A stretch of 64,000 nucleotides of DNA, taken from Octopus sinensis. Its lineage: Eukaryota. The DNA is taken from the NCBI RefSeq assembly GCF_006345805.1, contig NC_042997.1, positions 203,608,001 to 203,672,000 of the forward strand, in the 5' to 3' direction. Below are positions 2,821 to 62,250 of the stretch, piece by piece. Positions within the stretch are counted from its first letter, which is position 1. The number at the start of each line of letters is the position of its first letter. A model generated the notes under the pieces. It did not search any database, had not been told where the DNA came from, and saw only the letters and a program-made list of their open reading frames with translations. The translations under genes and the position numbers were made by a program.

Positions 2821-3901
2821 ATTATATTTCGCTTTTGGATTTGGTTTGCAACATTCTTTATGTGAGTTCGTGTGTTGAAGCGTATTCTGTTGTGTCTGGG
2901 GAGAGTCATTCTCTTTTGGTGCCTTATAATTTAACAAACTCACCGGCAAACTTTCCACTTATCTCTAGTTTTGAGTCAAAACTTTTGAAAAGGTTGCAAG
3001 ACGCAACGAAAATTTTAGAAAAATTAAAAGAAATAAGTGGAAATTTTACTGGTGTCTTAAATTATGAGGCACCAAAAGAGAATGACTCTCCCCAGACACA
3101 ACAGAATAATTATAATTTAACTGTTATTAATTTACCTTTTTTATGTTATTTTTCTTTTTTCTTTTCCCTGCAAATCTCCAACAACGCTTTTCCAAATTAG
3201 TTTCTTATATATTGTAGTTTCATTAATTAAAAAAACATTTCACACAAACATTCAATAATATGGTCCAAATCATTGTAATTATGATGTGCTTGTTTAGAGA
3301 TGGTATATTAAATACTTATTTTTTTCTTTTCTTTTTTATTGTGAACAAAACAGTATTTGCTTAAAATTGAAAACGAAATAAAAATTTTAAAAGAAGTATA
3401 AAATATTTACCAGTGTTATTTTTCTGCAACTTTTCTTCTCAGAGAATTCAAAGACGTTCAAAGAATTTCACAGGTTACAACGATGTCGTCTGCTCCTGAA
3501 ATCACGTGACACCCCCTCCTCCCACTGTCGTCGACTACTTAACTGTTACACAGCGGTCTCATAGAATTGACATTCTGATATTCCGGAATGTCTACCAAAA
3601 CTTTAAACTATAGCGCTTTATTGTTTAAAAAGTATATTATCTAATGAGTAATCACATCAGTTTAATTAATTTTAATGATCCCAGTTTTTATTTACACTGC
3701 ATGCGTAGAATCCCCGAATATTTACAAAAATCCATATTTTTGTAAATTGTCTTTTATTCTTTTACATTTTTCGGCCATGTTGGAGCACTGCCTTCAGTCG
3801 AACAAATCGACTCCAGGACTTATTCTTTGTAAGCCTAGAGCTTATTCTATCGGTGAGTTTTGCCGAACCGCTAAGTAACGGGAAGTAAACATACCAACAT
3901 C
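2644..3901. repeat. Copy 2 of the ~1.24-kb local duplication
   Basis: Aligns to 836-2080 with scattered substitutions. Confidence 0.95.
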
Positions 3902-20089: not shown

Positions 20090-20990
20090 TGAAAGCCTGA
20101 AGTTCATTAACAGAGCATATTTCTGGTGGCAACTATTGGTGGATACTACATGCTGGAAGAGTTTGTGTAGTTTCTCGTGAAGTCAGAGTAGGCAATCACA
20201 AACTCCAGGTATGCAAAGAGAGACTTTATCAAGGATGCTCCATGTGATGTTGGGGAAGTTGTTTAGATGGTCCCAGATTCTCCAGATGAAGTGGAACAGG
20301 GAGGTGGAGGTTTCCTGGTTCCTACACTTGAAAGAGTGCATGTGTTTGTGTATATATTCCATTCAAAATCATTGGCTGTCATGCCTGTAAATGTCTTGAG
20401 ATGTCATCAAATGATGTGAGAGTGTTCTTCAGACTAAAGCAAATAAAAGCCCCAAGTGGGCACTTAGTAGGATCTCAACACTTATGGATTGAAGTGTAGG
20501 ATGGAGACCATGTGGCTGTTTGTGTCTTGAAACCTTCAATGTTGGAAGCAATATTATCAAAGCATGAGTTACTAACCTTGAGTTAAATTAAATAGCTCAT
20601 ATCTATGGGTGCTTGGGAAATACTTTTTAACTAGCATCAGGAAGCTTCTAGCAACACAAATTGAAACCTCTTGATTGAATGGAGTGTTGAGTCAAATTAC
20701 TTTCCTCTTTCTCTCATCAGATATGGAATGGAAGGGATCCTTCATTATACACTTAATTTATTGATAAAGCCACTACTGGCTTGAACCTTGCTCATGGGCT
20801 GCCCTGTTGGTCATTCTGTTCCTTGATAGAATCATCTTTTGATGCCTGTTACTAAGTTTCTAATTACAGCAGATGTTCAAGTGAGGAGTCTATCAATATA
20901 AAGAGTTACCTCATTGAGCTTTCTATAAGGATATGTTGTAGTGAAAATAGTTCTCCCTCCCCACATGACAAAGTGGTATGACACAGTCAC
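20090..20990 (-). mobile_element. Penelope-like element ORF remnant (RT thumb plus GIY-YIG-type endonuclease region)
   Basis: Manual translation with frameshifts gives PYRKLNEVTLYI, RKRKVI*LNTPFNQ..FLMLVKKYFP, FTGMTANDF, HSFK..TSTSLFHFIWE, NITWSILDK, all resembling Penelope ORF motifs. Confidence 0.65.
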
Positions 20991-21342: not shown

Positions 21343-24068
21343 CATGTGGAGAAATAAATATATATATATATACATACACACACACACATACATGTATATA
21401 TACATATGTGTATTGTGCAGATGTTTGCATTTGTTTATGCTTACACTCTATAAAATATATAGCTACAAATGGTGAAGTTGTCATTCCTCAACAACAAATC
21501 ATCAACTGGGTACAGTTTTTGTTACATTTTTTTTATACACTTACCTAGCAGTATCCTTGTCTTGCGATTGTGTGATAGTTGTAAACAAATGTTTAGTTGC
21601 ATACAGGTGAGGGTTGGTGACAAGGAGATCTAATTGTAGAGAAACTACTTCAACAGACTCCATCTTTATCCACCCCATGCACATTTCCATATACTCTTAC
21701 CTAGCAGTATTTAAGTTGATTATCTTTTGTCTTGCAATACTTGGTGACCCTGACAGAGCAGGTGCCACTTAAAAGCACCCAATCCACACTGTAAAGTGGT
21801 TGGTGTTTGGAAGGGCATCCAGCTGTAAAAACCTTGCCTGTGCTTGTGCCACATAAAAAGCACTAAATCCACTCTGCTGAGTGGTTGGTGTTAGGAAGGA
21901 CATCCAGCTATAAAAATCCTGCCAAAACAGTTGCAGAAGTCTGGTGCAGGCTTCGGATGGCTGGTTCTTTTGGTACCGTCCCTCTCATGCTAGCATGGAA
22001 GACGAACGTTAAACAATGATGATAATGATACACTGACCTGAGTGCTCAACTGGTACTTATTTTATCAACCTCAAAAGGATGAAAGGTGATATTGGACTCA
22101 GTAGAATTTGAACTCAAAATGTAAGGATTGACGAAATACCTCTGCGCATTTTGGCTGGCATGCTAACAATTCTGCCAGCTTCCCACCTTTAACAACTCAT
22201 CCTGCGTTAAAATTAAATTTTTCCAAAAATCTATTGTTGAACGTCGCATGGTATTTCAAGGTATTTCAGTCTGTCAGGTACTCTTGTCAAGAGAAAGGTG
22301 ATTTAATTAGTCAAATATCATTATCATACAAGCAGTGCCATTTGTTTGCAATCTTCCATGGAAACATATCTGACCCACACAAGCATGGAAAAGTGGACAT
22401 TAAAATGATGGCAGCAACTGATGAATCCCACCTGATTTCTGGATAGGCAGGATATATGATTGTTTTTCAAAAGAGTTGTTTCTTTTAAAAAAACAAAAAA
22501 TCCATATTACTGTGGTTAACATCTAGACTAGTGAGTCTCAACCAGGGTCTTTATGGCCCGGAGTGGTGGGGAGGGCATATAGATCTTGCTATTAAAATTC
22601 ATTGGTTATATTTCTACATACACCAAATATTCTAATTTCTTTATACAATTCTCAATAATATTTAATTATAAAAGTACAATTGGATTTTTTAAACATTCAA
22701 TGGCTTGGGGGTCCACACAAATAAAACAGAAACTGGGGGGTGGGGCCCATAGGTTAAAAAATAGTTGAGAACCACTGATCTAGACAAAAGTACGGATCTG
22801 TAGATAGTTCATAGTCATTCATGTGGAGAAATAAATATATATATATATATACATACACACACACACACATACATGTAGATATATATATATGTGTATTGTG
22901 CAGGTGTTTGCATTTGTTTATGTTAACAAACCATCCACTGGTTTTTGCCTTCAAATGTGTGAAATAAAAATTCCTTTACTTGAAAAGCAGGTTCAGGTTA
23001 ACAAAAGGAAAGGTATCTGGTTATAAAACAAGCAGCTGACATAAAAAGCACCATTCACGCGTGATCGTTACCAGCATCGCCTTACTGGTACTTTTGCTGG
23101 TAGCACATAAAAAAATATTTGAGCAAGGTCATTACCAGTGCCACTGGACTGGCTCGTGTGCAGGTGGCACATAGAAAACACCATTTGAGCAAGGCCATTG
23201 CCAGTATTGCCTGACTGGCCCTCGTGCCGGTGGCACGTAAAATCACACACTACACTCCCAGAGTGGTTGGCATGGCATCCAGCTGTAGAAACTCTGCCAG
23301 ATTGGATTGGAGCAAGGTGCAGCCTTCTGGTTTGCCAGTCCTCAGTCAAATCATCCAACCCATGCAAGCATGGAAAGTGCACATTAAACGATGATGATGA
23401 TGAATTCATGGACACATTTGTCTAACACATGCTAGCATGGAAAAACATGTAAAAACAAATGAAAGAAAACCTTGTCATTTTTAATGATGCTCTGTCTTGT
23501 ATCCATAATATTGATTTCTTTCATTAAGGCACAAGTTGTATTTATAAGAAATGAAAATGTCTTCAGTTTTGAAGGCCTCTTGAAAGGCCACATTTAACAT
23601 TAGCTTCAGGTGTACACTGGAAGAGAAATATAGAGCTCTTGTGACAGAATGCCTGTCTATCGTAGACAGCATTCATATATATATATATATACTGCTTGAC
23701 TGGTCCTCGTGCTGGTGGCACGTAAAAAGCACCCAGAACACTTTCAGAGTGGTTGGTGTTAGGAAGGGCATCCAGCTGTAGAAACTTTGCCAGATCGGAT
23801 TGGAGCCAGGTGCAGCCTTCTCACTTTCCAGCCCTCAATCAAAGCATCCAACCCATGCCAGCATGGAAAGTGGATGTTAAACAACAACGATGATATATGA
23901 TATGCTTCTTTCAGTTTCCATCTACCAAATCCACTCACAAGGCTTTGGTTGGCCCAAGGCTATAGTAGAAGACACTTGCCCAAGGTGCCATACAATGGGA
24001 CTGAACCCAGAACCATGTGGTTGGTAAGCCAGCTACTTACCACAGCTACTCTTGCACCTATGTGTATA

Positions 24069-24127
<59 letters not shown>

Positions 24128-26934
24128 TATATAATCAACATCCTCATCATTTTAACATCCACTTTTCCATGTTTGCATAGGGTGGATAGAGATAGAGTTT
24201 GTTGTGGTAGTTTCTCTATGGTTAGATCTCCTTGTCACCAACTTTCACCTGTATGTAAGTAGTTAATATTGCCCCAAGGCAGCGTGCTGGCAGAATCGTT
24301 AGCATAATGGGTGAAATGCTTAGCAGTATTTCATCCACCATTACGTTTTGAGTTCAAATTCTGCCGAGGTCGACTTTGCCTTTTATCCTTTCAGGGTCGA
24401 TTAAATAAGTACCAGTTATGCACTGGGGTCGATGTCATCAATTTAATCCCTTTGTTTGTCCCCTCTATGTTCAGCCCCCTGTGGGCAATAAAGAAATAAA
24501 TATTTTCCCAAGGTGAAGATTGAAAACAAAAGGACACTGCTTGTGAGATGGTGACATTTGTTTACAACTATCACACAATGGCAAGACAAGGAGATAGTAA
24601 CATACCTATCCATATATATGCATGCACACTTCCATATACATGATCTGGTACATATTTCCAACTGCAAGTGGTACTGAAAAATGTATAATGGGTGCAAGCA
24701 TGGCTTTGTGGTAAGTTTGTGTCACAACTACGGAGTTTCAAGTTCAACTCCACAGCATGGCATCTAGCCCAAGTGTCTTCTACCATAACCTTAGATTATT
24801 AAAGCTTTTGAGAGAAATTGTGTGGAGCATGGCTGAGTGATCATTTTTATCCATGAGTGGTGGACAATATGTTCCCTAGTTCATCCTAACACTTTACAAA
24901 AATTAGCAATCAGATTTCCTGCAACTTTTATGCATTGAATAGGATTAGATTGCCTATGTTCAGTCCACTGCAGGACAAAGGCCTCAACATGTTCTCTACA
25001 CCAATCAGTCTAATGTGAAGGCCATGAATTTGAGCTTGAGATCATACTAGTGTGATGAGCCTTTTCTGCCTCAACAGTGGGGTACAGTTTTTGTTACATT
25101 TTTTTTATACTCTTACCTAGCAGTATCCTTGTCTTGTGATTGTGTGATAGTCGTAAACAAATGTCACCATCTCACAAGCAGTGTCTTTTGTCTTCAATCT
25201 TCTGTGAAGATATGCTTCACCTTGGGGAAATATTACCTTAGTTGCATACAGGTGAGGGTTGGTGACCCTGTCAGTGCAGGTGCCACTTAAAAGCACCCAA
25301 TCCACACTGTAAAGTGGTTGGTGTTTGGAAGGATATCCAGCTGTAAAAACCTTGCCAAAACTGACCTCGCCTGTGCTTGTGCCACGTAAAAAGCACTAAA
25401 TCCACTCTGCTGAGTGCTTGGTGTTAGGCAGGGCATCCAGCTATAAAAATCCAGCCAAAACAGTTGCAGAAGTCTGGTGCAGGCTTCAGCCTGGCCAGTT
25501 CTTTTGGTACCATCCCTCCCATGCTAGCATGGAAGACGAACGTTAAACAATGATGATAATGATACACTGACCTGAGTGCTCAACTGGTACTTATTTTATC
25601 AACCTCAAAAGGATGAAAGGTGATATTGGACTCAGTAGAATTTGAACTCAGAATGTAAGGATTGACAAAATACCACTGCGCATTTTGGTTGGTATGCTAA
25701 CAATTCTGCCAGCTTCCCACCTTTAACAACTCATCCTGCGTTAAAATTAAATTTTTCCAAAAATCTATTGTTGAACGTCACATGGTATTTCAAGGTATTT
25801 CAGTCTGTCAGGTACTCTTGTCAAGAGAAAGGTGATTTAATTAGTCAAATATCATTATCATACAAGCAGTGCCATTTGTTTGCAATCTTCCATGGAAACA
25901 TATCTGACCCACACAAGCATGGAAAAGTGGACATTAAAATGATGGCAGCAACTGATGAATCCCACCTGATTTCTGGATAGGCAGGGATATATGATTGGTT
26001 TTCAAAAGAGTTGTTTCTTTTAAAAAAACAAAAAATCCATATTACTGTGGTTAACATCTAGACTAGTGAGTCTCAACCAGGGTCTTTATGGCCCGGAGTG
26101 GTGGGGAGGGCATATAAGATCTTGCTATTAAAATTCATTGGTTATATTTCTACAATACACCAAATATTCTAATTTCTTTATACAATTCTCAATAATATTT
26201 AATTATAAAAGTACAATTGGATTTTTTAAACATTCAATGGCTTGGGGGTCCACACAAATAAAACAGAAACCGGGGGGGTCTAGACAAAAGTACGGATCTG
26301 TAGATAGTTCATAGTCATTCATGTGGAGAAATAAATATATATATATATATATACATACACACACACACACACATACATGTACATATATATATGTGTATTG
26401 TGCAGGTGTTTGCATTTATTTATGTTAACAAACCATCCACTGGTTTTTGCCTTCAAATGTGTGAAATAAAAATTCCTTTACTTGAAAACAGGTACATGTT
26501 AACAAAAGGAAAGGTATCTGGTTATAAAACAAGCAGCTGTAGAAACTATGCCAGATTGGATTGGAGCCAGGTGCAGCCTTCTGGTTTGCCAGTCCTCAGT
26601 CAAATCATCCAACCCATGCAAGCATGGAAAGTGCACATTAAACGATGATGATGATGATGATGATGAATTCATGGACACATTTGTCTAACACATGCTAGCA
26701 TGGAAAAACATGTAAAAACAAATGAAAGAAAACCTTGTCATTTTTAATGATGCTCTGTCTTGTATCCATAATATTGATTTCTTTCATTAAGGCACAAGTT
26801 GTATTTATAAGAAATGAAAATGTCTTCAGTTTTGAAGGCCTCTTGAAAGGCCACATTTAACATTAGCTTCAGGTGTACACTGGAAGAGAAATATAGAGCT
26901 CTTGTGACAGAATGCCTGTCTATCATAGACAGCA

Positions 26935-26966
<32 letters not shown>

Positions 26967-27337
26967 CTGATTGACTGGTCCTCGTGCTGGTGGCACGTAA
27001 AAAGCACCCAGAACACTTTCAGAGTGGTTGGTGCTAGGAAGGGCATCCAGCTGTAGAAACTTTGCCAGATCGGATTGGAGCCAGGTGCAGCCTTCCCGCT
27101 TGCCAGTCCTCAATCAAAGCATCCAACCCATGCCAGCATGGAATGTGGATGTTAAACAACAACGATGATATATGATATGCTTCTTTCAGTTTCCATCTAC
27201 CAAATCAACTCACAAGGCTTTGGTTGGCCCGAGGCAATAGTAGAAGACACTTGCCCAAGGTGCCATGCAGTGGGACTGAACCCAGAACCATGTGGTTGGC
27301 AAGCCAGCTACTTACCACAGCTATTCTTGCACCTATG

Positions 27338-27373
<36 letters not shown>

Positions 27374-29590
27374 TATATAATCAACATCCTCATCATTTTA
27401 ACATCCACTTTTCCATGTTTGCATAGGGTGGATAGAGATGGAGTTTGTTGTGGTAGTTTCTCTATGGTTAGATCTCCTTGTCACCAACCCTCACCTGTAT
27501 GTAAGTTAGTTAATATTTCCCCAAGGCAGCAAGCTGGCAGAATCGTTAGCATAATGGGTGAAATGCTTAGCAGTATTTCGTCCACCATTACGTTTTTGAG
27601 TTCAAATTCCACCGAGGTCGACTTTGCCTTTTATCCTTTCAGGGTCGATTAAATAAGTACCAGTTACGCACTGGGGTCGATGTCATCAATTTAATCCCTT
27701 TGTTTGTCCCCTCTATGTTCAGCCCCCTGTGGGCAATAAAGAAATAAATATTTTCCCAAGGTGAAGATTGAAAACAAAAAGACACTGCTTGTGAGATGGT
27801 GACATTTGTTTACAACTATCACACAATGGCAAGACAAGGAGATAGTAACATACCTATCCATATATATGCATGCACACTTCCATATACATGATCTGGTACA
27901 TATTTCCAACTGCAAGTGGTACTGAAAAAATGTATAATGGGTGCAAGCATGGCTTTGTGGTAAGTTTGTGTCACAACTACGGAGTTTCAAGTTCAAATCC
28001 ACAGCATGGCATCTAGCCCAAGTGTCTTCTACCATAACCTTAGATTATTAAAGCTTTTGAGAGAAATTGTGTGGAGCATGGCTGAGTGATCATTTTTATC
28101 CATGAGTGGTGGACAATATGTTCCCTAGTTCATCCTAACACTTTACAAAAATTAGCAATCAGATTTCCTGCAACTTTTATGCATTGAATAGGATTAGATT
28201 GCCTATGTTCAGTCCACTGCAGGACAAAGGCCTCAACATGTTCTCTACACCAATCAGTCTAATGTGAAGGCCATGAATTTGAGCTTGAGATCATACTAGT
28301 GTGATGAGCCTTTTCTGCCTCAACAGTGGGGTACAGTTTTTGTTACATTTTTTTTATACTCTTACCTAGCAGTATCCTTGTCTTGTGATTGTGTGATAGT
28401 CGTAAACAAATGTCACCATCTCACAAGCAGTGTCTTTTGTCTTCAATCTTCTGTGAAGATATGCTTCACCTTGGGGAAATATTACCTTAGTTGCATACAG
28501 GTGAGGGTTGGTGACCCTGTCAGTGCAGGTGCCACTTAAAAGCACCCAATCCACACTGTAAAGTGGTTGGTGTTTGGAAGGATATCCAGCTGTAAAAACC
28601 TTGCCAAAACTGACCTCGCCTGTGCTTGTGCCACGTAAAAAGCACTAAATCCACTCTGCTGAGTGGTTGGTGTTAGGAAGGACATCCAGCTATAAAAATC
28701 CAGCCAAAACAGTCGCAGAAGTCTGGTGCAGGCTTCAGCCTGGCCAGTTCTTTTGGTACCGTCCCTCCCATGCTAGCATGGAAGACGAAAGTTAAACAAT
28801 GATGATAATGATACACTGACCTGAGTGCTCAACTGGTACTTATTTTATCAACCTCAAAAGGATGAAAGGTGATATTGGACTCAGTAGAATTTGAACTCAG
28901 AATGTAAGGATTGACAAAATATCACTGCGCATTTTGGTTGGTATGCTAACAATTCTGCCAGCTTCCCACCTTTAACAACTCATCCTGCGTTAAAATTAAA
29001 TTTTTCCAAAAATCTATTGTTGAACGTCGCATGGTATTTCAGTCTGTCAGGTACTCTTGTCAAGAGAAAGGTGATTTAATTAGTCAAATATCATTATCAT
29101 ACAAGCAGTGCCGTTTGTTTGCAATCTTCCATGGAAACATATCTGACCCACACAAGCATGGAAAAGTGGACATTAAAATGATGGCAGCAACTGATGAATC
29201 CCACCTGATTTCTGGATAGCCAGGGATATATGATTGGCTTTCAAAAGAGTTGTTTCTTTTAAAAAAACAAAAAATCCATATTACTGTGGTTAACATCTAG
29301 ACTAGTGAGTCTCAACCAGGGTCTTTATGGCCCGGAGGGGGGGGGGGTATAAGATTTTGCTATTAAAATTCATTGGTTATATTTCTACAATACACCAAAT
29401 ATTCTAATTTCTTTATACAATTCTCAATAATATTTAATTATAAAAGTACTATAGGATTCTTTAAACATTCAATGGCTTGGGGGTCCACACAAATAAAACA
29501 GGAACCAGGGGGGTGGGGCATAGGTTAAAAAATAGTTGAGAACCACTGATCTAGACAAAAGTATGGATGTGTAGATTGTTCATAGTCATT
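21343..29590. repeat. Tandem segmental duplication: partial B, then A1(21509-22817) B1(22818-25079) A2(25080-26307) B2(26308-28328) A3(28329-29590)
   Basis: The anchor ggggtacagtttttgttacattttttttata recurs (first copy with small differences) at ~21509, 25080 and 28329. Repeated ORF-track entries confirm it (22234/25768/29031, 23481/26744, 25117/28366). Confidence 0.95.
22529..22777. mobile_element. hAT (Charlie-like) MITE with perfect 8-bp TSD ATCTAGAC
   Basis: Right end TTGAGAACCACTG, degenerate left end TAGTGAGTCTCAACC. TSD at 22521-22528 and 22778-22785. Duplicated at 29303-29548 (intact) and ~26065-26280 (right end deleted). Confidence 0.85.
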
Positions 29591-44619: not shown

Positions 44620-45968
44620 TCATCATCATCATCATCATCATTTAGCGTCCGTTTTCCATGCTAGCATGGGTTGGACGGTTTAACTGGGGTCTGTGAAGCC
44701 GGAAGGCTTCATCAGGCCCAGTCAGATTTGGCAGTGTTTCTACGGCTGGATGCCCTTCCTAATGCCAACCACTCCGTGAGTGTAGTGGGTGCTTTTTATG
44801 TGCCACCTGCACAGGTGCCAGGCGAGGCTGGCAACGGCCATGGTCGGATTGGTGTATTTTACGTGCCACCGGCACAGAAGCCAGTCGAGGGGGCACTGGC
44901 ATCGGCCACGAGTCGGATAGTGCTTTTTACGTACCACCAGACCAGGGGTCCTGGCTGGTTCAATTCGATTTCGATTTCGTTTGCCCCGACATGTCTTCGC
45001 AACATGTAATAAAAAGTTACAGTGACATGCCACATGTGACATCATTCCACTTTCTGAATAATCCTGGGTGCCTGTCGTCGGATGAGGTTCTATATTGACT
45101 TCGCTTGCCTCAACAGGTCTTTGTGTCCAAGGGAGGAAAGGCATGCATAAGTGGGCTGAGCTCCCTTGTCCTACCTGGTCTTCTCACGTACAGCATATTT
45201 CCAAAGGTCTCGGTCGCTGGTCATTTCCTCAGTGAGGCCTAAAGTTCAAAGGTCGTGCTTCACCACCTCGTCCCAGGTTTTCCTGGGTCTACCTCTTCCA
45301 TGGGTTCCCTCAACTGCTGGGGATTGGCACTTTCTCACACACCTATCTTCATCCATTCTCGCCACATGACCATACCAGTGCAATCGTCTCTCTTGCACAC
45401 CACAACTGATGCTATTTAGGTACAACATTTCTCTCAAGGTACTAACGCTCTGTCGAGTATGTACACTGACATTACACATCCAACGGAGCATACTGGCTTC
45501 ATTCCTCACGAGCTTACGCATGTCCTCAGCAGTCACGGCCCCTGTCTCACTGCCATGTAGCATGGCTGTTCGTACACATGCATCATACAGTCTGCCTTTT
45601 ACTCTGAGCGAGAGGCCTTTAGTCACCAGCAGAGGTAAGAGCTTCCTAAACTTTGCCCAGGCTATTCTTATTCTAGCAGTTACACTTTCAGCGCACCCAC
45701 CCCCACTACTGACTTGGTCACCTAGATAACGGAAGCTATTAACTACTTCTAGTTTTTCCCCCTGGAAAGTGACAGAAGTTGTTTTCTGCAGATTTTCGGA
45801 GGTTAATGCTCCCGAGCATCTGCCACATACAAAAACTATCTTCCCAGTTAGCCTACCTTTGACATTGCTGCACCTCTTATGTGTCCATAGCTTACACTGG
45901 GTACATCTTATAGAGTTTCTACCTACACCTTTTCTACAGATTGAGCAGGGCCATCTTCCTGAAGACAT
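44620..45968 (-). mobile_element. 5'-truncated RTE-clade LINE with a PHD-type finger in ORF2 and a (GAT)n tail
   Basis: ORF 45246-45968 contains LEVVNSFRYLG, RIRIAWAKFR, RRLHWYGHVARM and GRGRPRKTW; 3'UTR runs to the (cat)n tract at ~44620. Confidence 0.92.
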
Positions 45969-50168: not shown

Positions 50169-51059
50169 ATGAGCTACGTACGACGCGGGCCTTCTGAATT
50201 AGACTTAGAAGGCATGGTTTCACTAAAAGTGGACAATCTTACTTACAGAACAACACCAGAGGATTTGCGTCGCGCTTTTGAAAAATATGGCGACGTAGGA
50301 GATGTGTACATACCACGAGACCGCTTTACCAGGGAAAGCCGAGGATTCGCTTTTGTACGCTATCATGATAAACGAGATGCTGACGATGCAATGGATGCTA
50401 TGGACGGTGCTATGATGGATGGACGCGAACTACGTGTCCAAATGGCTAGATATGGTAGACCGGCTGACCCATATCGGAGAGGTCCCCCACCTCGCCGTTT
50501 TGGCGGTGGTGGTTATAGCTCATATCGATCGAGAAGACGATCATATACGAGATCACGATCGAGGTCGCGGTCTCGTTCATCACGCCGGCGAAGAAGATCG
50601 TATTCAAGATCACGAAGTCGCAGTAGAAGTCGTTCCTATAAAAGTAGATCAAGATCTCGATCGGCGTCATATTCCAGATCGAGCCGCAGCAAACATTACA
50701 GTCGTAGTCCATCTCCATCAAGTAAAGGAAAGAAGCGGAGCAGTGCAAGTAGTCGAAGAAGCACGAGGAGTCGGAGCGCCAGCCGGGAGAGGAAGAGCCA
50801 TTCTCGCAGCCGCAGCCCCGTCAGTCCAAGACGAAGTCCTGATCGATGCAGTGAAGGTCGCGACGGAAGCGAAAGTGGTGCTGGTGCCAATGCTGGTGGC
50901 GGCGGCGGAGGCAGTTCTGGCAGTGTACCACGAGAAAATTCCAAATCCAGAAGCAGAAGTCGAACCCCTCACAGCCGGAGCTGTTCTCCAGAAGCATTGT
51001 CAGACCGCGGCAGTAACGACCATAACGATCTCGAGCAGCAGGTGGAGGAGGAAGACTGA
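50169..51059 (+). CDS. SRSF2: Serine/arginine-rich splicing factor 2 (SC35) orthologue, 296 aa, intronless CDS
   Basis: ATG at 50169. [52 protein letters not shown] is close to human SRSF2 (including the P95-equivalent Pro), followed by an RS domain and a Gly-rich/acidic tail. Confidence 0.97.
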
Positions 51060-54000
51060 AATGTTTGTAATTTGGAGACAAAAATCACAAGAAAAAAAAA
51101 AAAAACACAGAAAAGAAAGAAAATACAACCACAGCAGAAGAACACTGATATCTTGGCAGCAGGTGAGATGAATGGGTTAAAATTTATTGTAGTGGTTGAC
51201 TGAAAATGATTTTAAAAAAGAAAAAAAAAGAAAAGAAAAGGCTTAAACAATTTTTTCATTCATCACAAGACACAAGCTGAACAGATATATATAAAAAATG
51301 ATGGTTTTTTTTTTTTTTTGAAAAGAATGAAAAAAAAAAAAAAGAAATCTCCAGCGAATGTTAAAACATTTGAAACTGATGGAGGTTTTTAAAGATGTTG
51401 GCGATGATGCTGAGTGTGAATGGCACCTTTTAAAAACCACTGTATACATTGGTGAGAGTTGCTGCTGTTGATGCTGTCTGCATGGTGTAGCTGTTCAAAT
51501 GTAAGACTACTTTCTGATAATGTATTGACTTTTTTTTTTTAAAACATTTCCTTTATTTTTTTTTTCACTTTCTTAATTTCCATGGCCATAGCTTTTTACC
51601 TATAAAAATGTGTTCGTCTGGAAGTATTTCCTCATTTTCTGCCCCCCTCCCATTCTTCATTATTATTACTATTACTACTACTACAGTTGGTTTAAAAACC
51701 AGTTTAAGATGAAACAAAAAATCAACTGATTTCTTTTATAAAATGTCATCATGCCTGGCGATAAATTGTATTTTCGTTCTGATAAAAATTATGTGGTTTA
51801 GATATTGTCGTCATGCTAGCTTTTTGGCTGGTTTACAAACTTAACTGTTTTTGTATCTTTTCATTTTAAAACTCAAGTTAAAAGTGACTTGAATGCATTA
51901 AAAAAATATTTTTTTTGCTTAGTTTCTAAATGTTCACCTCATGCAATAAAAACACTTAAAATAACTCTATAAAAACAATTCCCCTTGTAGTCTTGACTTC
52001 TGAAATATATATATATATATATAAAGAAAAAGAAAAATTATTTCGATCATAATCATTCTAGAAGTTGGTTTCTCTAAATGTATTAAATTTTTTAATAGTT
52101 GGGTTGGTTAACTGTAAATTTGTTGTGTTGGGAAACCATATTGAACATTATTGATTTTTAGTTTCAGCCAGTGTCTGTTGTAGTTAAGATATTTGATGAT
52201 GATGGTGGTTTCTATATCTTTTTTTTTTTTTCCTTGCTGTCATTATTCCACAAGGAGTAGTGTCGACTACAACATGAACTGTGAGCAAAACCGACATCAT
52301 CCTTCTACCGCCTCCTTACTAAATTTTAAACCCCTCTTCTGTCTAGATTTACTTGAGATGACAATATTTCTGTCTTGTGTTTTAGGGCGGAGTCAACTCA
52401 GACCCGGGGCATGTTCCAGGTTCCTGTTGATTGCTGCCGTTTTGTTGCTGCTTTTTTTGATGCCTCATTGCATCTGCAGTTGGAAGTGTAACCTCATTTG
52501 GTGGTATCAATTTAATATAAGTCTTAAGTTTTTGATTACTAAAAAACCGATTACAGTTTAGCATCGACTAGACAAACTTTGACGAGGGTACCCCCTGTCT
52601 CTTATTGTCAGACCATCCTTTCTGTTCTCAAGCAGTTTTACTGTAAAGGGACTTTCCATATTTTGGGCTATTTTCAAGAATCCAACGACATAATTGACAA
52701 CCCTGCCTCATGCTTCCATCCCCCTCTCCCTCCCCATCTTGCTTCAAATTAGTTCTTGACTTTAGTATACAGTTCTGAGAATGATAATGATTATAATAAA
52801 TCTGCCAATATACCCTGCTGCCGGTGTGGCCGTCCCTAATTCACCTACCCAGCCTACTTATATCACTGTTATTGTTTTTGCTTATCCTGTTTCCTAATTT
52901 AAATTCCTAAATGTTTTTAAAACATATTTTTAAATCTAAATTTTAAATTAAATGTTGTAATTTGTAAATGACCTCCGAGTCATAAATCTGTTTAACCCTG
53001 TGACTAGGGTCAATTTAATATTGTTTCTTTACCAAATTTGTATGCAACTGTGAAGACCGTTAAAATTATTATCATGGGTGGTGTGGTCTATGCTGCAGGG
53101 GTATTTGCTGGTTGGCTGCGGTGCTGTTGTTGGTTGCCGTGTAGCTGGTCTGTAGCTGGTCACTGGCAGTGCTGATGCTGCTGGTCTTGTAGCAGGTCGG
53201 TGAGGAGGAGGAGAGGAGGAGGAGGTGTCTGCTGTTCCTTACACAGCAGCAACTACACAATCTGGCTGCTGTCACTTGCACCAGTCTCCTGTGTGGCTGC
53301 AGAGCTCCCAATTATTGTAATGCTGTTGGGCTGAGATAGCTGTGCTGCTGCTGCTGCTGTGCCGCCGTACCCCGCTCTCAGAATGATTTTAAACCCGTGT
53401 TGCTGCTGTTGCTTGGGTCAAAACAACCCGTTGCTGTGCTTCAGTCATTTTGATCCTTATTTCATAGGTATGTATTGCAGAATTTCTTTTTCCCTTCAAT
53501 GCAGGTCTTTAAAAAAAAAAGGTCACTGGACTGACCTCTCTTACTGAGTGTCAGACCTCTCATTAGCATGCTTTATTTTCTCATGTTGTTAACAACCATT
53601 CCTCATGCACTGCAATTTATCTGCGGGTGCTGCTAAACCACGGCATAGGGTTTGTCTCTTATGAGATGAATTCTGGACAGGTTTGTGTGCTTAACCTGTT
53701 GTTGCTGTTCTGGTTGATCTTGTCAAAAGTGTAAAACTAATTTTTGCTGAAATCATCACAAATTACTGCCATCTTGTGGTTTTCTAGTCAAATAAAATTG
53801 TGACAATTTTTGCAACTACAAAATCTGAAATGTAATCTGTAGAAGGCAGATGACTTAAAGACAGTTATTTTAACTGTTTGAATATATATTACTCTCAAGA
53901 TGTGATGTAGCTGGAAAATGACTGTCTAACAGGTAAGTCTTGTCCTACCTGATCCTGATGAAGAGAAACAACTGTAGAGTCTGGTTTACCATCAACTGTA

Positions 54001-57000
54001 ATTTCTTCATAAAATACATTTTAACATACTGGTGTTTAGTTTTATTTATGCCATTCTAACACTTAAACACCATTAAGGTCATTTTTATTAACGGCTTTTC
54101 ATTTTTAACTTTTGTTTATTGCAGTTTAGGGGATTGGTGTTAAAATGAAACGTTTGGGTGTTCTGGAAATTACCTCGAAATTTTGCTGGAGCTTTAATGT
54201 GTAAAAACCTTTGCTGCTGGGGCTGTCACTGCTTTTGAAGTTCAATAATCACTGAGGCAGAATGAAAATGAGTTTCTTGCTTCGATTTTAGGGATTCCAG
54301 AACCAATTCTAGTTTTTTTTTTTTTAAACATCTTTTTTTTTTTTTTTTTTTTTTTTTCTTCCAACTAGGTAGTTTTAATTTTTAGGTTTTATTCCTGGGA
54401 ACCTCTAAATAGCATGACTTGTTTATAGAATCTCAGAAATACAAGAAGTTTTTTTCACTGAAATATGGTTTTATTAGCAAGATTTTTACATAAAACATTT
54501 GGTTAAATATTTATTAACGTTCTAAATCATTGCATTTGAATTTTAGGTATAATGTAGTGGGAAACGTTATTTCAGCTAAGCAATTATTACGGTCAGATAC
54601 ATAGAATAGGGCATGGGTTGATGGAAAATATTGCGTTTGGAGCTATTTTAGACTGGAAAAATGTTTAAAAAAAAAAAATATCGAAGGTAAAAAGTTAATG
54701 ATGACAACACTAACAGATTTGAAGCTTGAATACGTTTGTGTGATGCAGAATAACTTGCAATACAATTTCCGTTTACACAAATTGAATTTGTGAATGTTCA
54801 TATTTTTGTCAGTTAAATCCTGCATGCATCCACAAGCGCCTATATTTTAAGTGCAAATGAAATGCTGTTACAGATATAACAGCTGAGGTTTAAACTGCTT
54901 CAAATGAGAAGGCTTTATATTGTGGATTGCATTTGATGGCATGGCTGGTAGTGTTACGTGCAATCACTGCAGCAATTATGCCAGGGTTGTAAAAAAGTAG
55001 CCATGTCAGTGTGACAATGGTAGTATGAAAACTGGTTTATTGTTTGTGGTTGGTTCTATTTTTTTCTTTTCTTACTGTTGTTACTACCATTCCCTTTGTA
55101 TCTTACATTGATACTTTTTACAATCTGAAATAAACTTTATGGTAACCTGACAAAACATTGAAAAATTAGTTTTCGTGAAGGATGCACTGTTATAAGAATA
55201 ATTCTTGAGAAATTATTGTGAAGGTAAAGTATGATTCAAGGTTCCACGTAAGTCTGAAAGGAGAGGATGCTGTGCAGGCTGCAACAGTTGAAGTTGACTT
55301 TTGTATCTTAGAGGTCTACAACAAAAACAGCATTCAATAGCCTTGAAATAGAAATCAGCTATCCGAAATGCAGAAGTGTTTTTAGTTTTCCTTTTCTGAA
55401 ACTGTTACAGAAAGGATAATGTAAACAATATGTTAAATCATTTAACTATAGATGAAGAGCACAGGTTTTCGCAAATCAGACATATTGAACATGGTGTATT
55501 AAGTATGGTTTCTGGGGAAGAAGAATTTGATGTATGGATGAGTACATTAGTTGGTTGTTTTTTTTTTTTTTTTTATAAATATAACCAGTGAAGCTGTGAT
55601 TTATGGTGAAGGTAATGTAACAGCTTCTTCCAGTTTAACCAGCTGTGGACTACTGTAAACCTTGCTGATATGGAGGTGAGCAACCTTTTAATCAAATCTT
55701 CCTTGGTTTCTGTAATTATATTTTCACTTTATCCAGTCATTTAATTCCACTTGCACCACTACCATAATCACTTTTGGATTACGTCTTGGGTTTGGCTGGT
55801 TTACATCAACTTTGATTTAACTAAGTGATTGCTGCACCGACGAAAATGCTATTGTCCAGTAATGCCTAATGCTGAAAGCTTTTTGCAACCACACAGTCTG
55901 TCTTTTACACCTTCTGCAGATAATGAGAATGATCTTTTGAGAACTTGGAATCAAAGTTACAGCTCTGGTTAGAGTGGATAGCTGTATAATTTTGAAGTAA
56001 AATCTGTTTCAGACAGATTGTATCAAAATAGTATAAGAGCTGTGTTACGAATGGAGTTTCAAGTTAACCAATAGGAGTATATTGGCAGATTTTGTTTTTG
56101 AAGCTCTGACTTCACTATATATGACGACCATACAGTGCCACACGTGAGGGTATACTGTGCCAGAAGAAAAGCCACATAGATACTGCTGCAAGGAATGATT
56201 GCCAATTCTGGTTTACTTCAAGGTAAATACCCTTTTGTGTGGTTCATCAAGAGAAGGGAAGTTAATTTTTGAGTCCTTAATAAATTGGTATTTTACAAAC
56301 TGGTGTTGCTTTATTTATTTCTGTCCGTTATTGCAATTAAAAAAAATTTTTTTTTTTGGGATTTTGTGGTATGATCTAGTAGAAAATGCACTTCTTTTTT
56401 TGCTTTCTTTGCTTTTAAGGTTTGGAATGGTAGTGCATGTTTAACATGGATTTATATAGAATTAGGTGTCTAGTCTATATGGTGCCTGGAGACAGTGAGA
56501 TAAACTATTCCTGGATTGTTGAGGCAACAACTGCAGATAAATGACAAATGGAGTTAAATTAAGTTGGTGCTGATGTCCTTGTGTGAAGTGAGGATTTGTC
56601 ACCTGGTTGATCCAATTCCGCAAGTGTTGTGAATTGTCCAGCTGCTTTTAGTTTTGTTTTGGTATTTAATAGAGATTGTGTCATGTTGTGCTCAAATACA
56701 ATCTAAATATTTGCAATGCAAGGTTCATGGGCATAGGAGAGCAGCAGACTACATTCAACTACAGTAATCATAGACTCAATCTGAATTTGTCATATTGTAC
56801 TTTGTGTTTTCCCATACTTGGATGGGTTTTGAAAATTGACAAAAGGTGGAAAGGAAGTAATTTTGAGATTTTGTTGCAGGACAAGGTTTTAACATGAAAA
56901 ACAAAAATTGTAGACTCATAAATGGCTGTGTGGTGGAGATTTTCTTTTTGAGTGAATTTGCTTGATGGAAACCAAAAGGTGTTATATCCACACCATGTCT

Positions 57001-58899
57001 TGGATGTGCTGTAGCTGTAAGCAAATGGTGATCGGTATAAAGTTCATCCCTAATCTTCTGGAAAAGTATGCTCAACCATGGGAAACTGTTGAATACAACC
57101 TGGTATCGTGACCAAGCAAGTCTACTTATACAAAGCAAAATTGGTTTCTGCTGTTCAGAAGGAAGAAACAAGAAAGGTTTGAAAATAGTTTTTAAAAGAT
57201 TTCCATGCTTGACAGTTAAAAGTTGAAGACAGGACTTGTAATGCTCAGTTACTGAGACACTGAACTGGACAATAGAATCTATCCAGAGAATCCCTTTCAT
57301 CTTCATACAGACGTATCCTAAAGGGAGCTCTGATGTAATGAGGTCATGGTCAGTTGTTTGCATTGTAACTCGCAAATCTCTGGCCAAGGTGTTTTTAATG
57401 TCATCACTTCTGCTTAGGTGACAATTGATTGTAAGGTAAATTATGCATTAAGTTTTCCACCAAATCTTGAAATTCTCACCTGCTTCTGCTATTATGTTAA
57501 AAGTTTGCATATTTGTTAGTCTGGCATATTCTAAAAAAGGTGTGTACCTGTCAACATGTTACAAGTAACTAGGACTCAAGCCATGTCTTAAGAAATAGTT
57601 TCAAAAGTGTTACCCTCTTTGTCTGCAATATATCTAGAAAGTTAAACTGAAATTACAGCTAAATTCCAAACCTTGCTTTACTAGGACTGAAAGAAAATAT
57701 AAAAATCTAACGATTTTGCATGTTACTATATAACAAGGATTGACTACAGTACAGCAGGCTCATCAAATGTTTTATAATTTGTGAAAGATGTAGGGAGTAG
57801 TAAAGTACAGAATCAAATCTTTGTTAGGCAGTGCATTGGAGCCGTGACTGCTGTTAAAATTTTGCATGGTGTCCGATCCGATTAATTTTAAAATTGTTCA
57901 CTTAATAGCCATAACAATTTGCAAATTTTCATCACAGTTCCTGTGTTCTTTCATAAACTACAGAAAATTTAGATGTGGTTGACCAATGTGCACATCTTAA
58001 AAACGGGTATGCAAAATGCCTTTTATTAAGCCTGGTAAATTGGGAGTTATTTGATATATAACAGGTGCTTATGAGAGGCCATCTTTGTTCAGAATTTAGT
58101 TCAAGATGAACTGGTTCGTGTTATTTAATATTTTCTAATGTGCAAAAACAATCTTATTTACTGACAACAATCCATATAGTTTTCTGGTCATTTGTATTCA
58201 CTTAAGGTGGTGTTTATAGGGGGATAGCTGTAACAATTGAAAAATTGTCCATACTTAGGGCTTGCAGCTTGATTGAACATGAAGTGTGAAAGCAAAACCA
58301 TTTGGTGGATCAAGGGGGTTAAGTTTGGAAAAGTCGACCACATAGTTCAATCTCCTGACTAATGTGAAATGTTTTATTCATTGGGAGTTTGTATCTCATG
58401 TAAAGTTGACAAATAATTACGAAACAAGTTGACACTGCACTATATTACAATTTTGATGCTTTATTGAGAAGGTCGCAAGATGCAATGAAGATTTTAGGAA
58501 ATTTTTTACCAGTGAGTTAAATTATAAGGCACAAAAAGAAAATGACTCACCAGATAACAGAAATATAAAAGATCTGTGATTTTGCATGTTATTGTATAAC
58601 AAGCAGGCTCATCAGGTAGTAGTACAGTTCAAAATCAGAAATCTTTGTTGGGCAATATTGAGAAATGTGTTGGAGCCATGACTAAACTACAGCCTTTTAG
58701 TTGGTGTTTCTAGGTGCAACTAAAAATACTTTGGGTCAGTTATAAATTAATGGTTGCATGGTGAAAGACATGAACAGCTTGAAGCCGCAAAAAAATATTA
58801 GACAGGAAGGACATTTCATGATCCTATGGTTAGAAACTGACAAGTGACTTCATGCCAACATAAGTTATGCCCTTGTTTAGGGATGGGGGGTAGCATATA

Positions 58900-59314
58900 C
58901 CAGGTGGGCCAAAAGTAGGCATACACTTAAAAAATTTTCAAATTCATTACAATTACATTTATTGAACAGTTTAATTTTGTTAATGCTCGATTCCTCAAAT
59001 CTTTCCAGAACACTTTAAGTTAAAATCTGCATCAATTTCAATAAAAGCTGAGATGAATTCCTTTTACTGTGTGGTATTTGGTATGGATATGGTGTGTGGT
59101 CTTCACAAATGTTACAGTGACTTATCTCATTTTCTTCACTCCTTGACATCCAAATTTCAGTGCATTAATCATTGAATCTGTTTTTTCAAATTTATCTTGG
59201 TAGTGGTGAAGTGCCAAATGCTTCTCTTCATGCTGTACACACCTTGGCATTTTCAGTCTTCCACTGTATTTGCCATTATTCACAGTATCTGTAACCTACT
59301 TTTGGCTCACCCTG
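58900..59314. mobile_element. Tc1/mariner MITE with TA TSD
   Basis: TA|ccaggtgggccaaaagtagg ... cctacttttggctcaccctg|TA. Confidence 0.8.
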
Positions 59315-59999
59315 TATATAAACCAAATCATGGGCAGATTTTATTAGGATTAGTAGCACTTATTTCCAAGGTATTAGTGATGTAAATAAGTAAATTATTT
59401 GAAGTTTCGTTTGGGATTCTGTACAAATGAAACTATGCTGTAATATATAAGATATAGCGTAGGAGTGACTGGTAAGTAGCTTGCTTACTGACCACATGGT
59501 TCCAGGTTCAGTCCCACTGCATGGCACCTTGGGCAAGTGTCTTCTACTATAGCCTTGTGAGTGGATTTGGTAGACAGAAACTGAAAGAAGTCTGTCGTAT
59601 ATATGTATGTCTGTGTTTGTCCTCCCAACATTGCTTGACAACCGATGCTGGTGTGTTTACGTCCTCGTAACTTAGCGGTTCAGCAAAAGACATACTAGGC
59701 TTACAAAGAATAAGTCCTGGGGTCGATTTGCTTAACTAAAGGCGGTACTCCAGCATGGCCACAGTCAAATGACTGAAATAAATAAAAGAGTAACAAACTA
59801 TGTGTTTTGACTTTTATAAAACTGCTTAAAAATATGCGATAGTCTTATAAATCAGGAATAGTTTCTTAAATTTTATTATTTGCCATATTAACTAATGGTA
59901 TCCTTAAGTCAGAACAATTTTAATTAGTGATTCTATAGAATTATCTTAAATGGAAGCAGCTTTACTCATGACCTTTGCTGGTACTCCTAAGATATAGTT

Positions 60000-60410
60000 G
60001 CATTCTTGAGCAGTTACAAAGCAGGAATGTTTGGATAAAGTTGCTAGTACCAGGTTTGGGGTGGTAAATAGAAGGGCCTGGGAGGGGTGGCATGATATCA
60101 ACCAACTCCATGCAGCAGTTAGCTACTGTAGAAATAATAGGTGTCTAAGCCAGAGGATGGGGAACAACTTGCATGGAAATCAAGAAGTGTTCCATTTTGT
60201 TTGTATTTATTTAAAAATAAAATTCCATTGTGGGTTTTGAGCTTTGTATAAAGTTGGTAACTGACAAAGGCTGAAGTATTCTTTTATCAAGAAGAAGGCT
60301 AGTGTTTGGGATGAAGACTTTTGCTTTGTTGTTGAGGACATGGTATCACCAGTGATTCTGAGGCCTAGCATTTGTAGTGAAGTTGAGGAATTTAGATATG
60401 TGCTAGTCAT
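60000..60410 (-). mobile_element. Degraded LINE fragment (CR1/L2-group RT C-terminal region)
   Basis: ORF 60207-60410 LQMLGLRIT..KEYFSLCQLPTLYKAQ resembles the 'L.ILG..F...YF...QL..LYKAQ' region. Confidence 0.45.
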
Positions 60411-61664
60411 AACTGGAGGAGGGGAGTTGCATTGTTGGAGACTAAAAGAAGAGAACTCAGGACAGCTGTCTTTACTTTGAAGAACCTAGATATGCTTTCA
60501 CTATGAGAGTACTGCTTGTGGAGCCGTTGTGGTTGATAAATGGAGGATAGGAGGACACTGCAAAGTTGGTAGAGATCATAGTAAAAAAACAGAAGGATTA
60601 GCTGCAGTTTGGGAGTATGTGATGGATGAAGGCAGCTTCAATTTAAATAAGGGTCATACAGGAGTTGCATTGGAGAGTAGAAATTGTTCAAGAAGCTTTC
60701 ACTTTATGGTGCTGGTGGCATGTAAAAGTACCCAGTACACTCTAAAGTTGTTGACATTAAGGACACCCAGCTGAAGTGAAGAAACAATGGAGCCTGGTAT
60801 GACTCCTGTCAAACTGTCTAACCCATGTCAGCACGGAAAATGGATGCTAAATGAATAGGATGAGATTTTTACCAAACATTCATGGTTTATGTCCAGTTTG
60901 CAGCAGGTGAATCACCCAGATGTAATAGTGTGTGTTTTGTTTGTATATGAGATGCCTAAGATGGGTGGAAGACATTTTGGCATAGATGGTTCAATGCTGA
61001 CTTATTTGACATCAGATGTTTTAATGTTTCTCTTGTTCTTTTCCCCCACTCTCTGTTCATACAATCACATTTTTCTATGTGTCTTAAGAGAGGGAAATCA
61101 TCAATATTTAACACCCATTTTCCTTGCTGGCATGAGTTGGCAAGCCAGAGAGCTGCACCAGGCTCTAATTGTCTGTTTTGGCATGGTTTCTATGGCTGGA
61201 TGTCTTTCCTAATGACAACCACTTTACAGAGTGTACTGGGTGTTTTCGTGTGACACCAGCATGTGAGCTTTTTACAGGGCACCAGCACCACATCAGTCAT
61301 AAATGTAACATCTCACTTGCTCCCAATCAGTATATATACTTGCATGTGCACGTGTTGCTGTCACTAAAACAGGTTGAATGGGCAGTCAGCCAAGCCAAAA
61401 TAGCAGTGCCAGTTGTCTCATTCTATAACAACTTCAAATACCATTTTCTATCATTTATCTACCTGTGTTTGTGTATACTCGTGTCTAGACATCACATGGT
61501 GGTTGTAGATGAGCATCATCGTCATACAAGGAAGACTCTTTGTTTCCAGTCATTTTCAGTTATGGGGAAATATTACCCTGCTTGGAAACAGGAAGAGCAT
61601 CCCGTGGTAGAGAATCAATTCAGGATGTATGAAAAATAGACTTCCTCAAATGTCAGCAGGGTGG

Positions 61665-62250
61665 TACTTAGAAGTAGCAGACAGTTTCCGTTACCTAGGT
61701 GACCAAGTTTGCAGTGGTAGCAGTTGATCTAAAAGTACAGCTGCTACAATAAAAATAGGCTGAGCAAAGTTCAGAGAGCTTCTTCTGTTAGTAACAAAAG
61801 GCCTCTCCTCCAGAGTGAAAGGTAGATTGTATGATGCCTGTGTATGGACTGTTATGCTACATGGGTTGTGACTGCTGAGGACATGTGAAGGTTTGAAAGA
61901 AATGAAGCCACTATGCTTCGCTGGATGGGTAATGTCAGTGTGGATATACAACAAAGTCTAAGTGATTTGAGAGAAAAACTGGGTATACAAGGCATCAGAT
62001 GTAGTATGCAAGAGAGTAGACTGATGTGTATGAATGAAGATGTAATCATCCTAGCATATAGGCATGTCTCTTGCAGGCTTGTGGGTGCTGGTCCTACATA
62101 TAAAGCACTCAGTATACTCTGTAAGGTGGTTACCATGAGGAAGGGCATCCAGCCATAGAAACCATGCCAAAACCGACATGGAGCCCAGCAGCTCCTGTTG
62201 AACTGCCCAACCCATGCCAGCATGGAAAACAGCTGTTAATGATGATGTAT
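61665..62250 (+). mobile_element. Degraded RTE LINE 3' fragment, same family as 44620-45968
   Basis: ttagaagtagcagacagtttccgttacctaggtgaccaag.. aligns to the LEVV.SFRYLGDQ region; ends in the RTE tail with (gat)n. Confidence 0.8.

Follow-up and report, generated by a model that had tools for sequence, protein, structure and literature searches.

A plausible self-limiting splicing module in the 3' untranslated region of octopus SRSF2

The homeostasis of SR proteins by poison splicing is a vertebrate textbook case. Does a mollusc SRSF2 gene limit its own expression in a comparable way? We address this question for the SRSF2 gene of Octopus sinensis and the ~4 kb of DNA past its stop codon. The window, meaning the whole stretch of DNA analysed here, is 64,000 nucleotides long (positions 203,608,001 to 203,672,000 of the forward strand of contig NC_042997.1, RefSeq assembly GCF_006345805.1) and locates to chromosome CM016859.1 of assembly GCA_006345805.1. 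Octopus positions are counted from its first letter. A preliminary description of this DNA had listed splice-site and poly(A) motifs past the SRSF2 stop and proposed that they form a circuit equivalent to that of mammals, in which spliced transcripts are marked for nonsense-mediated decay (NMD). The mammalian premise was borne out: two papers, both citing Sureau et al. (2001), state that mammalian SRSF2 limits itself by splicing in its 3' untranslated region (3'UTR) that triggers NMD (PMC7764535; PMC7726792). For octopus, comparison with other species makes self-limiting poison splicing of the SRSF2 3'UTR plausible. The case is carried by a strong candidate 5' splice site at a position conserved in other lophotrochozoans, by a dense UGCUG cluster downstream of it, and by a conserved 3' splice site and exon in other molluscs to which part of the octopus 3'UTR aligns.

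Judged by its protein, the octopus gene is an SRSF2/SC35 orthologue, as the preliminary description had it, and we consider the identification sound. The coding sequence (CDS) is one uninterrupted open reading frame (ORF) of 296 aa that ends in TGA at 51057-51059 (window ORF analysis). Its N-terminal RRM, recognized by the Pfam model RRM_1, is 78% identical to the RRM of mammalian SRSF2, and the RNP-2 (LKVDNL) and RNP-1 (RGFAFVR) motifs are identical. An RS domain follows C-terminal to the RRM in the translation, and the top 120 protein matches are SRSF2/SC35 of molluscs, insects and vertebrates. Past the RS domain the octopus protein has a long C-terminal extension (50800-51056, residues ~215-296) with a Gly-rich stretch and an acidic tail. 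Used as a query, this extension returned no homologues in a protein database search.

Splice sites in the window were scored with a position weight matrix applied to all GT and AG dinucleotides on both strands (128 kb in total); its vertebrate-type frequencies were not trained on octopus. For comparison we used the SRSF2 loci of Pecten, Aplysia, Patella, Babylonia, Pinctada and Gigantopelta, one unidentified lophotrochozoan Logan contig, and hamster. The first donor past the octopus stop, at 51162/3, ranks in the top 0.2% of GTs at 11.7 bits, with 15 sites as good in the 128 kb. It is the sole GT of at least 2 bits from +1 to +260 of the stop. Each of the seven non-octopus lophotrochozoan loci likewise has exactly one AG^GT between +81 and +124 past its stop (a caret marks the exon boundary; the octopus donor is at +103), and the donor context is common to several of them, e.g. 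GAAAG^GTTACT, AACAG^GTTACT and GAAAG^GTTAAT. An AGGT is expected by chance in a 50-nt window with a probability of 0.12-0.17 per locus, so that the joint probability for seven loci is 8e-7 with this post hoc window and ~1e-3 with a three-fold wider one. At the motif level, the donor proposed in the preliminary description is thus backed by both its score and its conserved position.

Farther downstream, the seven loci have a conserved 3' splice site 0.4-1.4 kb past the stop, followed by a GCUG/GCAGU-rich exon. The hypothesis of a GCTG cluster was framed on octopus and then tested on the other loci. In five of the seven (Aplysia, Patella, Pinctada, Gigantopelta and the Logan contig), when both strands of the locus are considered, GCTG is densest in a sense-strand 400-nt window 0.4-1.3 kb 3' of the stop; in Pecten, the downstream window ranks second. 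The target made up 2-9% of each locus in this test. The clusters begin directly past a (Y)ATTAAC or CTAAT branch-like box (~27-36 nt upstream), a pyrimidine tract and the sequence YAG^G(A/G)GC(A/T)GTAA. A model built from four species had its top match at this element in independent whole loci, with E 2.8e-5 in Gigantopelta and E 0.0056 in Babylonia. The downstream exon of these molluscs is rich in GCUGU, GCAGU and GUUGC, GCAGU being the most enriched 5-mer. Together these features suggest that mollusc SRSF2 genes carry a conserved 3'UTR intron with a donor beyond 55 nt from the stop. Counted from the stop, the predicted intron extends from +124 to +482 in Pecten maximus, +81 to +493 in Aplysia californica, +94 to +421 in Patella vulgata and +88 to +987 in Gigantopelta aegis. 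In Pinctada the acceptor and exon start are present in two tandem copies, at 12262 and 12679 (GATCAGGTGTAAAATGCTG, GTCAGGTGTAATAAACTGCAG).

The octopus 3'UTR contains the only dense sense-strand UGCUG cluster of the window, at 53.06-53.45 kb. It holds 24 GCTG in 400 nt, against at most seven in every other window of that size on either strand. For the region past the stop as a whole, GCTG occurs 46 times in sense and 10 times in antisense orientation (same-size tiles: mean 12, maximum 26) and TGCNGYY 26 times (tile mean 2.4, maximum 7). Motif enrichment over dinucleotide shuffles has z-scores of 9-10; TGCTG has z = 13. By 1-kb bins, 53001-54000 has 28 GCTG and 14 TGCNGYY; all others in the 64 kb have at most nine GCTG and at most two TGCNGYY, except the adjacent 52-kb bin (6). 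The consensus of SC35-dependent splicing enhancers is UGCNGYY (PMC3152345). A k-mer model trained on the other species also places its top octopus window here (53051-53450), a result that is not independent evidence because the training segments were chosen by GCTG density and the test is partly circular. A scan with Rfam gave no match at gathering level, and a stable stem-loop as in human left no fold signal (z-scores +1.1 and -0.1). Two trivial origins of the cluster were tried and rejected. For a microsatellite, Tandem Repeats Finder reports just short arrays of 17-24 nt, e.g. (GCT)7 and (GAG)8; for a transposon, the interval 49-57 kb has no repeat copies elsewhere in the window.

A direct match to the conserved element lies at the start of this cluster. 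When the Aplysia acceptor and exon (-50 to +260) were searched against the 128 kb with nhmmer, the top match was a collinear alignment at 53021-53292 (E 7.5e-4), and a reversed-sequence control gave none. Within the segment aligned to the Aplysia 3' splice site (Table 1), the acceptor AG itself is lost, and AG is next met at 53054-55 (AAG^A) and then at 53097-98 (CAG^G, 7.45 bits). The equivalent circuit that the preliminary description proposed for this mollusc is partly supported, by its donor, by an enhancer-like array and by the conserved downstream 3' splice site found elsewhere, but not by the octopus acceptor. Neither the conserved-acceptor segment at 53.02-53.06 kb nor the UGCUG cluster was among the features it had listed.

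What of the features that it did list? All nine motifs (three donors, three acceptor AGs and three AATAAA) and the stop are present at the coordinates given there, and taken alone this set is not above chance; the evidence lies in features outside it. The most substantial of the remaining motifs are donor 53932 (12.7 bits, top 0.1%, seven sites as good in 128 kb) and acceptor 53504 (9.9 bits, top 0.6%, 42 as good). They flank 53505-53932, one of three such pairs of strong acceptor and strong donor in the 128 kb (p ~0.09), which on motifs alone would be a well-defined candidate exon of borderline significance. Donors of at least 11.7 bits number two in 4 kb against 0.48 expected (Poisson p ~0.08). 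The scores of 53503-04 and 53932/3 thus hold up, but the other lophotrochozoan loci lend these two sites no support. Three further sites score as ordinary: donor 53467 (160 as good), acceptor 54124 (208) and acceptor 52167 (517). Comparison supports neither the weak acceptor at 52166-67 nor the donor at 53467/8; since 53468-53504 spans just 37 nt, donor 53467/8 and acceptor 53503-04 cannot bound one intron. Acceptor 54124 lies 20-40 nt past a TATTAAC, an arrangement that no other acceptor of at least 7 bits has in the 128 kb (p ~0.03-0.09). It had no profile match, and the branch-point box that it shares with other molluscs lends it weak support despite its ordinary score. Conservation in other molluscs, which the preliminary description had put forward as a check, is thus found for the donor position but not for the listed acceptors, apart from this box. 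The three competing AATAAA are real as motifs but occur at chance frequency: with a fourth at 53791 that had been missed, the region has four (51945, 52795, 53791 and 55129) against 4.9 expected. Plus-strand G>C and T>A skew is sustained from ~52 kb to ~61 kb (window 52000-62000), and might reflect plus-strand transcription beyond the last AATAAA at 55129.

Table 1. Features of the octopus SRSF2 gene and its 3'UTR (window coordinates; a caret marks the exon boundary)
Feature	Position	Strand	Remarks
SRSF2 coding sequence	50169..51059	+	RRM, RS domain and acidic tail; single exon; RRM_1 E 1.4e-22
Candidate 5' splice site CAG^GTGAGA	51160..51168	+	exon end 51162, 103 nt past stop; 11.7 bits
Small UGCUG cluster (TGCTGCTGTTGATGCTGTC)	51455..51480	+	~400 nt past stop
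Proximal AATAAA	51945..51950	+	possible intronic or escape poly(A) signal; chance frequency
Small UGCNGYY cluster	52425..52480	+	motif scan
Segment aligned to Aplysia branch box, pyrimidine tract and 3' splice site	53010..53057	+	CAATTTAAT..TTGTTTCTTTACCAAATTTGTA; ancestral AG is TG
Large enhancer-like UGCUG/GCUG cluster with GGAGGAG patch	53058..53450	+	includes TGCTGGTTGGCTG at 53106
Alternative candidate acceptor TGCTGCAG^GGGTATTTGCTGG	53097..53098	+	7.45 bits; like GCTGTAG^G in Pecten and Gigantopelta; putative
Donor ATAG^GTATGT	53465..53473	+	junction 53467/8; donor 7.5 bits, same AG as acceptor 9.6 bits; no comparative support
Candidate 428-nt cassette exon	53505..53932	+	best acceptor of the region (53503-04, 9.9 bits) and best donor (CAG^GTAAGT, 12.7 bits)
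Candidate acceptor TTATTGCAG^	54082..54124	+	AG 54123-24; preceded by TCATTTTTATTAAC, like the mollusc (Y)ATTAAC box
Small GCUG cluster	54190..54240	+	directly downstream of acceptor 54124
Distal AATAAA	55129..55134	+	possible end of long 3'UTR; chance frequency

These elements can be assembled as follows. The ~4 kb past the octopus SRSF2 stop would be a regulatory 3'UTR, the cephalopod version of a mollusc-wide 3'UTR splicing module. The 5' splice site at 51162/3, 103 nt past the stop, would be joined to a downstream 3' splice site. First in line for the latter are the AGs at 53054-55 and 53097-98, where the UGCUG cluster begins, followed by 53503-04 and lastly by 54123-24. Binding of SRSF2 to the UGCUG(Y) enhancer-like array (53.06-53.45 kb) would promote use of the 3' splice site, and splicing would leave an exon junction over 55 nt past the normal stop. 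If exon junctions stimulate NMD in octopus, the spliced mRNA would be marked for decay and excess SRSF2 would lower its own mRNA. The productive form would be the unspliced mRNA, possibly ended at the proximal poly(A) site. From the motifs, their enrichment, and the conservation of position and sequence in other molluscs, we infer the splicing itself, SRSF2 as the binder and the NMD outcome. Use of a 3'UTR intron that starts at 51163 seems to us somewhat more likely than not. The full autoregulatory-NMD reading we hold tentatively, at slightly less than an even chance.

The closest known system is mammalian SRSF2, which belongs to the same gene family and has its regulated intron or introns wholly in the 3'UTR. 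Dreumont et al. (2010) showed that the terminal 3'UTR intron of SC35 is activated by multiple low-affinity SC35 sites and that the downstream exon is conserved, and they identified GUUGCAGU as an essential core of the exonic splicing enhancer (ESE) in the human terminal exon (PMC2831310). The mollusc motif type resembles the conserved SRSF2-type array of the mammalian exon (GUUGCAGU, UGCNGYY-like), and in mammals and octopus alike an exon junction is predicted more than 50 nt past the normal stop. The systems differ in layout. The octopus enhancer-like cluster spans ~350 nt, compared with 60 nt for the human ESE. The first 3'UTR donor of hamster lies 8 nt past the stop and makes an NMD-silent junction, and inclusion of cassette exon 3 adds the second exon junction complex (EJC) that mammalian SRSF2 needs for NMD (PMC7726792). 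Mollusc donors lie 81-124 nt past the stop, so any use of them would already be NMD-competent. Unlike mammalian SRSF2, the octopus gene has no CDS intron, and its 3' splice site has several candidates.

Is the mollusc exon related by descent to the mammalian one? The enhancer region in the hamster SRSF2 terminal exon is ultraconserved in mammals. The hamster locus has its terminal 3' splice site at 12563 and GTTGCAGT at 12614, a sequence that recurs in the Aplysia exon and, in two copies, in the Gigantopelta exon. In whole-locus scans, hamster -60 to +110 and the Aplysia exon are reciprocal best local alignments (score 35, z ~6), and ~43 of 51 positions match between hamster 12568-12618 and Aplysia 22527-22585, including TGCTGGTT.GCTGTTA. 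The 12-of-13 pattern TGCTGGTTNGCTG is common to hamster, Aplysia and octopus (53106), and this is its sole match in the octopus window even with one mismatch allowed. When the hamster sequence was used as the query against octopus, the match was not top-ranked. Since nhmmer finds no significant link between hamster and molluscs, we treat common descent as a lead only. A noncoding regulatory exon might be deeply conserved from hamster to Aplysia; the larger claim, that the SRSF2 3'UTR unit is a noncoding element of bilaterian age whose retained intron, 3' splice site and SRSF2-responsive enhancer array persist in molluscs and mammals, we regard as rather unlikely.

Other genes offer the same logic in different sequence. 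SRSF1 and TDP-43 have sites in the 3'UTR for the gene's own protein that activate a normally retained 3'UTR intron, in competition with poly(A) choice (PMC3950720; PMC7764535). Proteins and motifs differ (TDP-43 recognizes UG repeats), and neither has a sequence relationship to the SRSF2 module. Poison splicing of SRSF5 shows that unproductive splicing of an SR gene can be preserved between very distant lineages (Lareau and Brenner, 2015; PMC4379411). That event lies inside the coding region of another SR paralogue, and SRSF2 is not treated in that study; most human SR-gene unproductive splicing events arose independently (PMC4379411).

The history of the octopus gene bears on how the unit could have been retained. 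An intron past the RRM and an UNC-93/MFSD11 neighbour are typical of the SRSF2 gene context without strictly defining it, and neither was detected at the octopus gene. The other lophotrochozoan loci and hamster have an intron directly past the RRM/linker (e.g. SSYR^GTAGGC in the Logan contig), whereas the octopus CDS has none, a pattern suggesting that the octopus lineage lost the intron or retro-processed the gene but retained the 3'UTR intron-like region. Such retention would be expected if productive germ-line mRNA retains the 3'UTR intron. A-rich low-complexity tracts, from 21 nt past the stop, and long T runs occupy 51080-51142, 51214-51240, 51305-51319 and 54333-54357; the A tract is not a retrocopy tail, being too near the stop and having no poly(A) signal ahead of it. 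In Pecten, Aplysia, Patella, Gigantopelta and hamster, SRSF2 stands head-to-head with an UNC-93/MFS (MFSD11-like) gene, a microsynteny that extends over molluscs and a mammal. Pinctada has a P450 gene in that place, and a search of the 50 kb upstream of octopus SRSF2 detected no UNC-93/MFSD11 exons. Since cephalopod genomes are rearranged, synteny is uninformative as a test for a retrogene. The Logan contigs nearest to octopus in protein (L006-L008) are unspliced, and their RRMs are just 73-76% identical. Two observations concern SRSF2 genes of other species. In Patella, another RRM gene (196 aa; locus 19795-20947) follows SRSF2 on its strand at a distance of ~8.6 kb and is apparently a tandem SRSF2 duplicate. 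Many Logan/ENA SRSF2 products (P0129, P0131, P0076, P0126) have short non-homologous tails soon past exon 1, e.g. ...RSRYRLEFDLCFIDF before the stop, and P0129 alone represents 64 sequences on 25 contigs. Such products might reflect abundant isoforms that retain the coding intron or include a poison exon within it, or else gene calls on genomic DNA.

A number of results weigh against self-limiting splicing in octopus. The splice-site scores come from vertebrate-type frequencies, and good donors and acceptors are as dense in 51060-55134 as in the window background. As the aligned acceptor AG is lost, the octopus 3' splice site is undefined. The forward Aplysia match carries high composition bias, the reciprocal search of Aplysia with octopus had the Aplysia exon on top but at E 0.089, and multi-species profiles of the conserved acceptor and exon had no significant octopus match. 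Enrichment in octopus is confined to UGCUG, with GCAG and GUUGCAGU not enriched; since MBNL-type YGCU(K)Y sites match UGCUG(Y) too, the identity of the binding protein is ambiguous. No transcript support was found: look-up of the exact octopus protein led to the genome contig only, the protein is absent from the clustered protein collection, protein homology searches (full length, C-terminal tail and RRM) had no cephalopod sequence among their matches, and look-up of a 3'UTR ORF gave no match. There are also doubts about the decay step. No poison isoform was detected for Drosophila SC35 (PMC7726792), and for NMD in both Drosophila and C. elegans an EJC-independent model applies (PMC10761751). 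In molluscs, dependence of NMD on the EJC has not been established, and the 50-55-nt rule on which the preliminary description relied is established for vertebrates but not for these animals. Under a long-3'UTR model of NMD, splicing could shorten the UTR and stabilise the mRNA.

How far do these points favour other explanations? The ordinary acceptor motifs, the missing ancestral AG and the lack of transcripts would all fit a long unspliced 3'UTR in which the UGCUG/CUG-like cluster is a platform for another RNA-binding protein (muscleblind-type, YGCY) that controls stability, localisation or translation. The octopus enrichment, in UGCUG/UGCU and not GCAG, is compatible with both YGCU(K)Y and UGCNGYY. 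There are 46 TGCT where the mean is 18.6 (z 5.2), and TGCC, CGCT and CGCC are not enriched. An unspliced UTR would leave unexplained, however, why a strong donor sits at a position conserved in 7/7 other loci and why the cluster of other molluscs starts exactly at a conserved branch box, pyrimidine tract and AG; moreover, GCAGU, their top 5-mer, does not fit YGCY. We consider this explanation unlikely. The intron might instead be real, whether constitutive or alternative, and serve to switch 3'UTR content or the poly(A) site, or to shorten an NMD-prone UTR and so stabilise the mRNA. Excising 1.9-3.0 kb greatly shortens the UTR, the conserved donor and acceptor are silent on the fate of the product, and the EJC-independent NMD of flies and worms would suit such a role. 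Yet the mammalian homologue uses exactly such junctions for NMD, and a junction more than 55 nt past the stop, as in all eight loci, would be disfavoured by selection in any constitutive mRNA if NMD is of the EJC type. A splicing event with this different outcome has, in our view, a small probability.

It is also conceivable that nothing here is functional, the splice-like motifs being chance products of AT-rich DNA, the cluster decayed low-complexity sequence, and transcripts ending at the 51945 signal. Background splice-site density and AATAAA at the expected frequency agree with that, as does the absence of fold signal and of nucleotide conservation over the whole 3' region, for which octopus was compared with Pecten, Aplysia and Patella, three mollusc classes, by blastn and nhmmer. 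Chance does not readily account for a strand-specific cluster that is unique in 128 kb and contains tandem repeats only as arrays of 17-24 nt, nor for a like cluster at the same place in five to six of seven independent loci and the collinear Aplysia match, and we rate a wholly inert 3'UTR as improbable. Still less credit is due to the idea that 52-55 kb belongs to a separate plus-strand transcript, a long noncoding RNA or the 5' part of a downstream gene. The positive G and T skew does run on from 52 to ~61 kb, but no ORF, Pfam or Rfam signal lies downstream, and the homologous exon of other molluscs is within 0.4-1.4 kb of the SRSF2 stop; this origin is very improbable.

Outside the SRSF2 gene, the window contains a direct repeat at 21958-29329 with a unit of 3.25-3.5 kb in ~2.3 copies (97-100% identity). 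Retroelement-like ORFs lie on the minus strand: one, at 7018-8429, matches the Exo_endo_phos endonuclease (E 6e-9) beside a weak RVT_1 match, and a separate one, at 45246-45968, has a weak PHD-finger match. Two similar ORFs at 974-1384 and 2619-3200 have no Pfam matches.

The age and evolutionary flexibility of SR poison splicing are debated, and self-limiting splicing of octopus SRSF2 would speak to both. If the module is mollusc-wide, and combines a donor in the 3'UTR with a conserved acceptor and an enhancer-like array similar to that through which human SRSF2 acts on itself, then the SRSF2 circuit would be either much older than the vertebrate ultraconserved element or re-invented repeatedly with the same grammar. 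Should the unit prove to be of bilaterian age, SRSF2 would be the second SR gene after SRSF5 with unproductive splicing kept across phyla. For genome annotation, the mollusc loci suggest that conserved 3'UTR exons are missed by models restricted to coding sequence. Flies and worms do not rely on the EJC for NMD, and the SRSF2 module would offer a direct way to find out whether lophotrochozoans do.

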